Sequence record: NC_049849.1 | Strand: one strand, 5' to 3' | DNA length: 64,000 bases | Shown: piece after piece, positions 59,513-62,896 of the stretch | Layout: each line of letters starts with the position of its first letter | Position numbering within the stretch: position 1 is the first letter of the stretch | Notes under the pieces: generated by a model | Database searches by the model: none | What the model was told of the DNA's origin: nothing | Seen by the model: the letters and a program-made list of their open reading frames with translations, nothing else | Made by a program: the position numbers and the translations under genes

Positions 59513-60094
59513 ATGAAGGCCCAACTCATCTTTCGCCGCTTCGCATTGGTCGCTATCGGAGCGTTCACCGCATTCTGTTTCATCCAACATGATCGCGCAG
59601 TCAAGACGCCGAGTGCTCCGTATGAATGGTTGACCAAGCTCAATCAGGTGCAGAAGTATCCGGTGGCTGATATCGAACTCGCCGCCGAGCAGCTGTACTC
59701 GATGGAAGACTTGCAGTGCCTGGCCAAGAACGTCTTTCATGAAGCCGGCGTTGAAACGGACAACGGCAAAATTGCCGTCGCGCAAGTCACGCTCAATCGC
59801 GTGGCTGCTGGTCGCTGGGGCGATTCGATTTGCGACGTGGTGTACAGCCCCGCGCAGTTCAGCTGGACGCTCCAGCCGCACAAGGTCAAAGAGGAACCGA
59901 AAGGTGAGCTGTGGGAATCGTCGTTGCAAGCCGCTGTGCGCGTCCTGCAAGGCGAGCGCAACGATGAGTTGGCCGAGTCCCTGTTCTATTACAACCCGGA
60001 CAAGGTCCGCAGAACTCCAGCTTGGGCCAGCAAGAAGTACATGATTGGCAAGGTCGACTCTCACATTTTCTTTACACAGGATCGCAAGAAATGA
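59513..60094 (+). CDS. SleB/CwlJ-like cell wall hydrolase (Hydrolase_2) with N-terminal anchor
   Basis: CLAKNVFHEA...AVAQVTLNRV...ICDVVY..AQFSW; LFYYNP; W. Confidence 0.85.
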   Translation: MKAQLIFRRFALVAIGAFTAFCFIQHDRAVKTPSAPYEWLTKLNQVQKYPVADIELAAEQLYSMEDLQCLAKNVFHEAGVETDNGKIAVAQVTLNRVAAGRWGDSICDVVYSPAQFSWTLQPHKVKEEPKGELWESSLQAAVRVLQGERNDELAESLFYYNPDKVRRTPAWASKKYMIGKVDSHIFFTQDRKK

Positions 60095-60447
60095 GTGCTC
60101 TTACGAAATTGAAAGAGGTTCGTCAGCTTCTGGCAGAGCCAAGTGCCTGGCGCCAGGACAACTATGCGGGCTTCCGTCAGGAGGACGGAACAATCTCCGC
60201 CTGCTCGACCGAATCGCCGAACGCCAACTGCTTCTGCATTCTTGGTGCACTGATTCGCGTAGGCGTTGAGGACGGCACCGCGAAGGACGCAGTCATAACC
60301 CAAGCGATCCGGTTCGGTATTGATATTTTGTACCCGCAGTACTGCACGATATCGGAATTCAACGACGCGCCTGGCCGTACGCACAAAGAAGTACTTGAAG
60401 TGCTCGACGTTGCAGAGCAGCGCCTTCAGGTACTCGGAATCATCTGA
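60091..60447 (+). CDS. paralog family member 1 (C[FW]C[IM]LGA / FNDxPxRTH; DUF6197-like)
   Basis: Motifs shared with three downstream genes; start refined. Confidence 0.75.
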   Translation: MSALTKLKEVRQLLAEPSAWRQDNYAGFRQEDGTISACSTESPNANCFCILGALIRVGVEDGTAKDAVITQAIRFGIDILYPQYCTISEFNDAPGRTHKEVLEVLDVAEQRLQVLGII

Positions 60448-60465
60448 CATTAAGGAACAGCAGAT

Positions 60466-60780
60466 ATGAACAAGCAGTCATTTCTGAGCCGCTTCGGCTT
60501 CTCTTTGCTTATGTGTGTTTTGGTTGGCACTGCCAGCGTGGTCGGCATCGCGGTAACCGACGCAAAAGCCAAACCCAAGGAGGACGCCAAGCCCTATCTT
60601 GGTACGCACGTCGGAAACGTGGGCTACTCCAGCATTGAACTGTGGACGGCGCAGCTTCCCGACGGAACCAACTGCGTTGTCACCATCAACGCGTCCAAAA
60701 ATCACGGCCTCGTCCACAAGACGGCCAAGGACCCTGGCGTTTCCTGCGACTTCTCGCAATCTCTCAAGGTTCAACAATGA
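60466..60780 (+). CDS. membrane-anchored hypothetical protein
   Basis: N-terminal TM helix; AAGGA RBS. Confidence 0.55.
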   Translation: MNKQSFLSRFGFSLLMCVLVGTASVVGIAVTDAKAKPKEDAKPYLGTHVGNVGYSSIELWTAQLPDGTNCVVTINASKNHGLVHKTAKDPGVSCDFSQSLKVQQ

Positions 60781-61139
60781 AGAGCACACTCGAACACCTC
60801 AAGGCGGCCCGCGCCGTTCTCGCCGAGCCTATCAACTGGCACCAAGGTGACTTCGCAGCCCATCGCGCAGAAGATGGTACGATCACGCCGACGGATTCCG
60901 AACACCTGCAAGGACGCGCACCCAACTGCTGGTGCATCCTCGGCGCGTTGCGTAAAACCGATAAGTACGACAACGGCGAAGCGGATCAAGCGTTGCGCGC
61001 CGCTATGTTTGAGCTCTTCGGCACACGCAAAATCGTGGCGTTCAACGATCAGCCGGGGCGTACGCACAAAGATGTACTCGCCGTGTTTGATCGCGCCATC
61101 GCCCATGAACAACAATGGCAGCAAGGACAACAGCAATGA
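60777..61139 (+). CDS. paralog family member 2
   Basis: WHQG, NCWCILGAL, FNDQPGRTH; start refined. Confidence 0.75.
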   Translation: MKSTLEHLKAARAVLAEPINWHQGDFAAHRAEDGTITPTDSEHLQGRAPNCWCILGALRKTDKYDNGEADQALRAAMFELFGTRKIVAFNDQPGRTHKDVLAVFDRAIAHEQQWQQGQQQ

Positions 61140-61492
61140 CTGACAAGACCCCACTAGAAGTTCTGAAAGACATACGCGAGACCTTGAGCGACCCTGAGCA
61201 TTGGCGCCAGGGCGACTATCAAGGGCATCGCATCGGCGGCGTGACATTCGATCTATGCCATGCAGCCGTTCAAGGTCGCGCACCCAACTGCTGGTGCATC
61301 CTCGGTGCCATGTTGAAGAGCACCTATGTGCGCGGCTTGGTGGTCGAAAAGAAACTTGAGCAAGCAGTCAATCACTTCCACCCGCGCTTCAACTCAGTCG
61401 CGGCCTTCAACGATGAGCCCGGTCGGACGCACGAAGAGGTACTGCAAGTGATTGACTACGCCATTCAACGTGAGCAGGAGCAAGCGCAATGA
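61136..61492 (+). CDS. paralog family member 3
   Basis: WRQG, NCWCILGAM, FNDEPGRTH. Confidence 0.75.
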   Translation: MTDKTPLEVLKDIRETLSDPEHWRQGDYQGHRIGGVTFDLCHAAVQGRAPNCWCILGAMLKSTYVRGLVVEKKLEQAVNHFHPRFNSVAAFNDEPGRTHEEVLQVIDYAIQREQEQAQ

Positions 61493-61881
61493 GCAAGACC
61501 ACACTAGAAATTCTGAAGGAAGCGCGTCAGCTTCTGGAAAAGCCTGAGTCGTGGATCAAGGGCTACTATGCAGCCAAGCGCGAGTCTGATGGTCGCATCC
61601 AGGTCCTCATCAGCGAAGAAATCGACGGCGGAAAAGGCGTGGTCGTCCGGGCAGTAGGAGGCACTGATCCTCGTGCTGATTGCTTCTGCATGTTGGGCGC
61701 GTTGCAACGTGCAGGTGCGTTGGAGCGCAACAGCGAAGCCGAAGCCGTGCTGCGTGACGCCATCAAGATCAAGATCGGTTTTCACGATCAGGTACATTCG
61801 TTCAACGACTCGCCGCAGCGTACACACGACGAAGTACTGGCAGTGTTCGATATCGCAATTCAACAGGAGCAGCTGAAATGA
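61489..61881 (+). CDS. paralog family member 4
   Basis: WIKG, DCFCMLGAL, FNDSPQRTH. Confidence 0.75.
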   Translation: MSKTTLEILKEARQLLEKPESWIKGYYAAKRESDGRIQVLISEEIDGGKGVVVRAVGGTDPRADCFCMLGALQRAGALERNSEAEAVLRDAIKIKIGFHDQVHSFNDSPQRTHDEVLAVFDIAIQQEQLK

Positions 61882-62090
61882 GTTTCAAACTTGTAGTTCG
61901 CATCGAAGTTCAGAACGAAGAAGGCGAAGTCGTTGATGCGCGTGGTTACGCGACGCATCCGAAAATGAAAGGCTGGTCGCCGTTGCAGACCACGAAGCAG
62001 ATGCGTGAGTTCGCGCACATCGGAAACGCGCATGAGGCCATGAACCACATGCACAAGGTCGTCGGCGCAGTTGCCGATATCATCGGTTAA
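61878..62090 (+). CDS. hypothetical protein
   Basis: AGGAG RBS, coupled. Confidence 0.5.
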   Translation: MSFKLVVRIEVQNEEGEVVDARGYATHPKMKGWSPLQTTKQMREFAHIGNAHEAMNHMHKVVGAVADIIG

Positions 62091-62137: not shown

Positions 62138-62896
62138 ATGGCAAACAAGAACCGCGGTGCTCGTGCTCAGGACTTCAAGCAGGGCCGTACCATGTACCTT
62201 GCGTACTTCGGCGAACTGCAAGTCGTTCACATCCTCGGCCGGCCTTACAACCGAGGTGGCGGCTCGATCATGAGCGCAGTCGACGTTATGAAGGTCGACT
62301 ACAAAGGCCGCTATGAGAGGGACACTCTGTTCCTCGGTGATCGCGGCGTGCCGGGTTTCGCATACGATCAGCGCCCGAATGAAATCTTTCTGTCGCGTGG
62401 GGCGTGCGAGCGCAACCTCGAACGTATCAAGGAGTACCGCGATGAGTTGTGCACTCGAATCTCAAACGACATGCCCCTATCGTGGATGGATTATCCCGAC
62501 TACGACGACTGGCATGAGCCGTCGCCCGACGAGCAGGTACGGAATGTCCTGAGCCGCATGGCAAGTGTCGGCACGCGTGAAGGCTACTTGCACGAAGTGC
62601 CCGAGCGCCTCTATGAAAACTTCACCATGAGCGATCACAGTACCACGTACGTCTGCCGCAAGCTCGAGTCTGACTGCATCGCCATTGACTACAAGCGCGA
62701 CGACGCCACGGGTGACTGCAAAGACGTGCATGAGTTCTACACGTTGCAGAAAGGTATGTGGCGTCGAATTCTCGAAGGCCGTTTCCATGATCGCAAAAGC
62801 CCGACGGCCTCGAAAGACTTCTGCAAGTTCCCGGTCGCGCACGAAATCAACGAGCTGCTGAAAGGCCTCGTCACCTACGCAATGGAGAGGAACTAA
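62138..62896 (+). CDS. hypothetical protein
   Basis: AAGGA RBS; 252 aa. Confidence 0.6.
   Translation: MANKNRGARAQDFKQGRTMYLAYFGELQVVHILGRPYNRGGGSIMSAVDVMKVDYKGRYERDTLFLGDRGVPGFAYDQRPNEIFLSRGACERNLERIKEYRDELCTRISNDMPLSWMDYPDYDDWHEPSPDEQVRNVLSRMASVGTREGYLHEVPERLYENFTMSDHSTTYVCRKLESDCIAIDYKRDDATGDCKDVHEFYTLQKGMWRRILEGRFHDRKSPTASKDFCKFPVAHEINELLKGLVTYAMERN

Follow-up and report, generated by a model that had tools for sequence, protein, structure and literature searches.

The first 64,000 bases of the genome of Achromobacter phage Motura (MN094788.1), referred to below as the window, contain a run of four diverged paralogs, A to D, of the phage protein family DUF6197 (PF19698). Sequence comparison shows that these paralogs are old and stably kept, and that they lie in a replaceable slot, flanked on one side by a cell-wall hydrolase gene and on the other by a gene resembling Phage_g100. 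The reading that we favour, at a probability of roughly 45%, is that they are sub-specialised ligand-binding or catalytic modules which would work alongside one another to take over the host or counter its defences. Motura (genus Moturavirus) is a jumbo phage of 221,431 bp isolated on Achromobacter animicus.

The DUF6197 array of phage Motura

The array and the gene that interrupts it consist of the following features; residue numbering throughout is that of paralog B, the second copy.

60091..60447, plus strand: DUF6197 paralog A, 118 aa; PF19698 E 4.2e-17, 62.9 bits; CFCILGA and FNDAPGRTH
60466..60780, plus strand: unrelated open reading frame (ORF) of 104 aa interrupting the array; no Pfam match; weak PHROG 3641 match, E 0.0076
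60777..61139, plus strand: DUF6197 paralog B, 120 aa, used for the structure model; PF19698 E 6.1e-22, 78.5 bits
61136..61492, plus strand: DUF6197 paralog C, 118 aa; PF19698 E 6e-18, 65.6 bits; start overlaps the stop of B by 4 bases
61489..61881, plus strand: DUF6197 paralog D, 130 aa; PF19698 E 3.3e-20, 72.9 bits; start overlaps the stop of C

The four ORFs start exactly where the first-pass annotation of this DNA had placed them (60091, 60777, 61136 and 61489), and all are annotated as hypothetical proteins in GenBank MN094788.1. That annotation had also likened them to DUF6197, and indeed all four proteins score well above the PF19698 gathering cut-off (62.9–78.5 versus 24.6 bits; E 4e-17 to 6e-22), with alignments running from positions 1–9 to 110–111 of the 111-position model. 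All four also match PHROG 762 (function unknown). Membership of the array in DUF6197 can be regarded as confirmed, far beyond chance.

Pairwise amino-acid identity among the paralogs is 37–46%, and 28 positions of their alignment are invariant. Of the three motifs that had been described as shared, C[FW]C[IM]LGA and FNDxPxRTH are present in every copy; W-x-x-G holds in three and fails in paralog A, which has W-R-Q-D. W21, C53, G56-A57, N90-D91, H97 and D105 are kept in all four window copies. An alignment showed that paralog D carries a 13-residue insertion in a beta-hairpin loop. A word-based protein search with copy B returned only the query itself.

A six-frame scan of the whole Motura genome with DUF6197 gave five matches, all above the cut-off. 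The fifth copy lies outside the window at about 101,826–102,281 of the genome (L006:1498-1953) and encodes a more diverged protein of 151 aa, with a 30-residue insertion in the middle segment, CxxC instead of CxC and a shifted His position. It groups apart from the four window copies.

The ORF at 60466..60780 was correctly recognised in the first-pass annotation as an unrelated gene within the array, since it has no DUF6197 match. Its product starts with about 21 mostly hydrophobic residues, FGFSLLMCVLVGTASVVGIAV, read from the sequence, which suggests a membrane-anchored or exported protein.

Age, origin and variability of the copies

The array had been interpreted as a gene accordion. In the strict sense of recent amplification, this interpretation is not supported. 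The paralogs are only 48–56% identical in nucleotides and far from near-identical, and their synonymous sites are at or near saturation (pS 0.60–0.82; dS at least 1.2 or not computable); therefore, the copies are old. Non-synonymous divergence (pN 0.39–0.46) is well below synonymous divergence despite this age, which indicates purifying selection. The latter result also bears on the idea that the copies are redundant or decaying duplicates without separate roles. Paralog arrays are common in jumbo phages, as such an idea would have it, but all four reading frames are intact and keep all the residues conserved across the family, and the genes overlap at their starts and stops as in a translationally coupled operon. 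Already disfavoured by these data, redundancy or decay is most improbable.

No other sequence found is as close to the four window copies as they are to one another. Their clade had a support of 65 in a first tree and was not resolved in a second; a tree constrained to contain it was 12.95 log-likelihood units better than the tree from the free search (p-AU, from the approximately unbiased test, 0.58). A single origin of the four copies within the Motura lineage is thus the best topology found, though not a proven one, and is most likely.

Variability is concentrated in two segments between the motifs. Mean pairwise identity is 19% in residues 35–48, which form the hairpin loop, and 14% in residues 59–88, compared with 72–83% in the motif segments. 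The hypervariable middle loops described in the first-pass annotation are therefore present, but they are not special to the array: variability among the four paralogs follows the pattern seen across DUF6197 (Spearman -0.69, p 4e-16), so the variable loops are a property of the family.

Four public DNA runs yielded only short contigs (150–455 bp) of near-identical phages; none of them spans an array joint, and they are uninformative on copy number. Contigs 96–100% identical to window positions 60200-60559, 61081-61232 and 61609-61896 were present in metagenome runs from soil and groundwater and in a run from 2025, which indicates that Motura-like phages are present in independent samples.

A replaceable slot

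The genes that flank the array and complete its slot are as follows.

59513..60094, plus strand: SleB-like cell-wall hydrolase, left flank; Pfam Hydrolase_2 (PF07486), E 6.7e-23; hydrophobic N-terminus
61878..62090, plus strand: ORF of 70 aa, the last gene of the variable slot; no Pfam match; start overlaps the stop of paralog D
62138..62896, plus strand: right flank, a protein of 252 aa weakly resembling Phage_g100 (PF23772, E 4e-4, below the cut-off)

A 29.4 kb IMG/VR fragment (IMGVR_UViG_3300017540_000016, here G002) belongs to a relative of Motura, with a topoisomerase 84% identical and proteins 73–91% identical to those of Motura. The two are collinear over Motura positions 31.4 kb to 60,091, where the hydrolase gene ends; the hydrolase itself is 73% identical (tblastx). 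On the other side, a homolog of the right-flank gene 62138-62896 was found at L037:10659-11420, with 32% identity over about 210 of 252 residues (E 3e-18). Between these two flanks, G002 has one gene of 109 aa encoding a Zn-ribbon-like protein (L037:10239-10568), versus six genes in Motura. The ORF at 61878..62090 has no counterpart in the G002 fragment, and no DUF6197 gene was found in its 29.4 kb. Because G002 holds a single unrelated gene between the same flanks, the array is accessory cargo in a replaceable slot, and the slot between the hydrolase and the g100-like gene is evidently a cargo hotspot.

In Motura, the hydrolase gene, annotated as cell wall hydrolase or endolysin, overlaps the start of paralog A with its stop codon. 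From 59513-60094 through 61878-62090, consecutive genes are joined by 4-base stop/start overlaps, except for one 18-base gap, so that the run from the hydrolase to the 70-codon ORF looks like one translationally coupled unit. A promoter and terminator scan of 57–64 kb found no sigma-70-like promoter sites, and terminator-like sites at background rate. The hydrolase gene sits amid genes of the replication region and not in a lysis cassette.

Copy number, tandem arrays and fusions

The first-pass annotation had proposed a comparison of copy number among phages. Since the family is too diverged for BLAST, copies were counted by hidden Markov model (HMM) scans of single phage records, a small sample biased to BLAST-detectable genomes. 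The number varies from 0 to 6:

PaBG: 0 copies; of the complete phages found, the closest relative (topoisomerase 61% identical)
Xanthomonas phage X1: 1 copy
Caulobacter phage Lullwater: 1 copy
One IMG/VR genome: 1 copy
Pseudomonas phage pf16: 2 copies, adjacent
Stenotrophomonas phage RAS14: 2 copies, adjacent
Alcaligenes phage QDWS595: 1 clear copy and 2 weak ones adjacent to it
Myxococcus phage Mx1: 3 copies, adjacent (L008:4001-5065)
Synechococcus phage BUCT-ZZ01: 3 copies, adjacent (L030:2998-3985)
Rhizobium phage RHph_I1_18: 3 copies, 2 adjacent and 1 apart
Pseudomonas phage Milchi: 3 copies, 2 adjacent and 1 apart
Motura: 5 copies, 4 and 1
Mycobacterium phage WXIN: 6 copies, in groups of 3, 2 and 1

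In addition, two metagenome contigs have three overlapping DUF6197 genes each. At least 10 of 14 phage genomes or contigs bearing DUF6197 have at least two copies, at least two of them adjacent in each, a fraction which is only indicative because of the bias of the sample. Sister relations are strongly supported for the Mx1 triplet (100/96), for a WXIN pair (100/100) and for the two domains of one fusion protein (98/88), indicating repeated independent local duplications. Fusions also exist: many proteins have two DUF6197 domains and one has three. In the predicted model of a two-domain protein (predicted template modelling score, pTM, 0.85) one continuous helix links the domains, which suggests that they are held in a fixed mutual orientation. 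Within the limits of this biased sample, tandem multiplication together with domain fusion appears to be the usual state of DUF6197, with several independent origins.

In phage QDWS595 (vB_Af_QDWS595), genes gp66-gp68 (L039:762-1845) comprise the clear gene followed by two weak matches below the cut-off (E 5e-5 and 1.4e-4); this suggests that DUF6197 arrays can diverge past recognition by the Pfam model. Two metagenomic proteins are unusual in architecture. P0007 (990 aa) has eight near-identical DUF6197-like repeats without CxC, and is either a true repeat protein or an assembly artefact. P0198 (382 aa) combines an ImmA/IrrE-type peptidase domain (PF06114) with a degenerate C-terminal DUF6197 domain that has neither the invariant Cys nor the His.

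Family breadth and conserved residues

A profile built from the five copies was searched against 1.84 billion cluster representatives, and 14,031 proteins (50% identity clusters) were found at E <= 1e-3 and 1,504 at E <= 1e-10. The phage setting assumed for the family in the first-pass annotation agrees with these data: clusters from the ESM Atlas and structural neighbours from BFVD are mostly viral, all of them uncharacterised, and DUF6197 is overwhelmingly phage-borne. The hosts of the phages concerned belong to the Pseudomonadota, Actinomycetota, Myxococcota and Cyanobacteria. A tblastn search of 50,697 phage records with copy B found Motura, Mx1 and WXIN only, and the same search with a central family member found 17 records. 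A pattern scan derived from the paralog alignment found one locus in IMG/VR and no locus in genome_contigs.

Searches of PADLOC and NCBIfam and sequence and profile searches of the PDB gave no useful match for DUF6197 proteins, and an ESM Atlas search with DUF6197 excluded gave no usable match. In the literature, DUF6197 was found mentioned only in the genome announcement of Gordonia phage Nebulosus (PMC10586128), and PF19698 and PHROG 762 nowhere; a jumbo-phage survey does not discuss the family.

Conservation was assessed in an alignment of 130 diverse single-domain members. Cys53 and Asp91 are the sole invariant residues, and Leu8, Arg12, Pro18, Trp21, Ala27, Ala49, Gly56, Ala57, Asn90, His97, Asp105 and Ile108 are conserved in at least 90% of members. 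Cys, Asp and His are thus among the most conserved residues, as had been supposed. A strict Cys2-His-Asp metal site was considered and rejected as a family feature, because Cys51, the first Cys of CxC, is kept in only 80% of members (Ser in 12%) and His97 is replaced in Mx1 and in several fused domains.

Predicted structure

An AlphaFold2 model of paralog B, built from the 130-sequence alignment, has a mean predicted local distance difference test (pLDDT) score of 94.5 and a pTM of 0.87. From the N-terminus, the chain forms a helix and a beta-hairpin, then three shorter helices, and finally a long helix at the C-terminus. Cys53 immediately precedes a helix, the Asn90-Asp91 pair closes a short one and His97 opens the last, positions which would suit a candidate site made of helix ends.

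Foldseek found no match for this model in the PDB at E <= 0.001. In an exhaustive VIA-align comparison, the best match of both the single domain (Z 5.9) and the two-domain model (Z 6.6) was the C-terminal domain of GluRS. By the calibration of VIA-align, a Z under 8 (for helical models, under about 13) may mean a common arrangement only. The values lie below this noise level and within the chance range for helical models; therefore, a GluRS-type anticodon-binding domain was rejected and is kept as a lead only. The closest entries, from bacterial GluRS (2cfo and 6brl among them), align over 86–92 residues with a root-mean-square deviation (rmsd) of 3.2–3.3, but at an identity of 9–13%; the beta-hairpin has no counterpart in them, and DUF6197 proteins are mildly acidic, unlike RNA binders. 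The predicted DUF6197 fold is thus one for which Foldseek and VIA-align detect no solved relative.

The mild acidity (family median isoelectric point, pI, 5.6) and small size of the proteins would suit an oligomeric sponge of the Tad1/Tad2/Acb2 type, a homo- or hetero-oligomer that traps an immune signal derived from a nucleotide in its pockets. The tandem and fused forms suggest that several similar domains assemble, and two arrays adjoin genes of NAD (nicotinamide adenine dinucleotide) reconstitution. Against this, no sequence or fold similarity to known sponges was found by PDB sequence search, Foldseek or VIA-align, the BFVD matches are all uncharacterised, and an invariant cysteine is unusual among known sponges. 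A sponge is accordingly a very unlikely explanation.

Gene neighbourhoods in other phages

DUF6197 genes occur in varied settings, and no one partner gene recurs beside all members. Members are found in early regions of T7-like phages, beside an RNAP1 subunit gene and a DprA-like gene in an N4-like phage, with Rad52 in a P22-like early region, near an integrase gene in a probable prophage and near a glutaredoxin gene. A gene like T4 Y00F (PF26820) lies directly upstream of a DUF6197 gene in two unrelated metagenomic phage contigs (L024:3273-3671 and L026:9612-9998). In Xanthomonas phage X1, a SleB-like hydrolase gene (30% identity) adjoins the single DUF6197 gene, as in Motura.

Other neighbours are genes of metabolism. 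NAD salvage genes (NAMPT with NMNAT or NadM-Nudix) directly adjoin the three-gene arrays of Mx1 and BUCT-ZZ01, phages of unrelated hosts; ThyX adjoins an array in a 134-kb contig; and in Gordonia A15 phages the neighbour of one copy is DNA polymerase I (PMC10586128). Together with the members near glutaredoxin and DprA-like genes, and with an invariant Cys and an Asn-Asp pair that might suit catalysis or nucleotide recognition, these neighbours would fit auxiliary metabolism, in which the proteins are enzymes or small accessory factors in the metabolism of nucleotides, NAD or DNA and serve phage replication rather than a contest with the host. However, no NAMPT or NMNAT gene was found in the Motura genome, PaBG shares replication genes yet has no DUF6197, the slot holds another gene in G002, and the neighbour genes change from phage to phage. 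We consider a role in auxiliary metabolism improbable.

Possible function of the paralogs

In the reading that we prefer, in which the paralogs are sub-specialised modules of host takeover or counter-defence, the four copies most likely arose by duplication in the Motura lineage. Each domain would be a small ligand-binding or catalytic module around a putative Cys/Asn-Asp site. Since the same polar residues are conserved across very different hosts, the target is probably common to all bacteria rather than a set of lineage-specific defence proteins, and could be a metabolite, a cofactor or a universal macromolecule conserved across bacterial phyla. Recurrent tandem and fused forms suggest that several like domains act together; the sub-specialised paralogs would work side by side, possibly as hetero-oligomers, and would act in the pre-late phase of infection. 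In line with this, single-copy and fused members are found within the early regions of T7-like, N4-like and P22-like phages.

Several points weigh against this reading. All three Mx1 copies have Lys or Gln at the position of His97, and the Cys and/or the His is missing from some fused DUF6197 domains, so the same chemistry is impossible for every domain. Part of the conservation of Cys, Asn-Asp and Gly-Ala could have structural reasons. Neither sequence nor structure searches (PDB, Foldseek, VIA-align, BFVD, ESM Atlas) found a relative of known function. Only the gene context suggests early expression in Motura, and no promoter-like site was found in 57–64 kb. Finally, G002 is a fragment, and the rest of that genome may contain DUF6197 genes.

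The first-pass annotation had proposed arms-race diversification, with each paralog inhibiting a different host defence component through its variable loops. Such a model would be in keeping with a phage-dominated family whose copy number differs between phages from none to six, with an array in a replaceable slot, with variable segments between conserved motifs, and with members in T7-like and N4-like early regions, the usual place of anti-defence genes. Yet the copies are old, without recent amplification, and the loops are no more variable in the array than in the family. The same polar residues are found across at least four bacterial phyla, a better fit to a universal ligand than to fast-evolving protein targets, and PADLOC, Foldseek, VIA-align and BFVD gave no sequence or fold match to characterised anti-defence proteins. 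We regard the arms-race model as unlikely.

More speculative, and in our view a long shot, is the proposal that DUF6197 represents a new fold class for counter-defence or host takeover, whose Cys/Asn-Asp site would bind or modify a universal nucleotide-derived molecule within a hetero-oligomer of tandem paralogs. The ligand would perhaps be NAD-related, since two unrelated phages have arrays next to NAD salvage genes, and a hetero-oligomer built from tandem paralogs, if true, would explain the frequent duplication and fusion.

Relation to known systems and significance

The family itself is already catalogued (PF19698 and PHROG 762), and the Motura array is, by its profile matches, a new member of it. 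The Motura copies share with the catalogued members a length of about 110 aa and the conserved W, C-x-x-G-A, F-N-D and T-H positions; copy D is longer than typical members in the hairpin loop and the fifth copy in the middle segment, with no difference in kind. The poxvirus-type gene accordion has in common with Motura tandem copies and a copy number that differs between viruses, but its copies are near-identical and recent, whereas those of Motura are only 48–56% identical in nucleotides and saturated at synonymous positions.

SUKH and other polyimmunity loci comprise small proteins in tandem diverged paralogs, with occasional multi-domain fusions, and are also present in viruses. They resemble the Motura array in their small tandem diverged paralogs and fusions, with no sequence or fold relation, and the invariant Cys and Asp of DUF6197 are unlike simple binding scaffolds.

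Gordonia cluster A15 phages have two DUF6197 copies per genome (gp47 and gp72 of Nebulosus), with a two-domain tandem fusion in sister phages (PMC10586128). They are like Motura in having the same Pfam family in more than one copy per genome. They differ in being 52-kb temperate siphoviruses of an actinobacterial host with dispersed copies, one of them beside DNA polymerase I.

For the window alone the finding is modest, as the family was already catalogued with its function unassigned. Its value lies in the family-level pattern and in testable hypotheses, not in a demonstrated new mechanism. New here are tandem multiplication and fusion as the apparent usual state of the family, the replaceable slot in Motura, and arrays that sometimes adjoin NAD salvage genes. 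DUF6197 is among the larger phage families of unknown function, with about 14,000 clusters in phages of at least four bacterial phyla. Its fold is confidently predicted without a significant match among solved structures, and its putative site, with the invariant Cys and Asp, is sharply defined. Together, the tandem and fused forms, the replaceable slot and the NAD-gene neighbours make it a well-defined target for structural work, biochemistry and anti-defence screens, for which the five copies of Motura would provide a natural variant panel.

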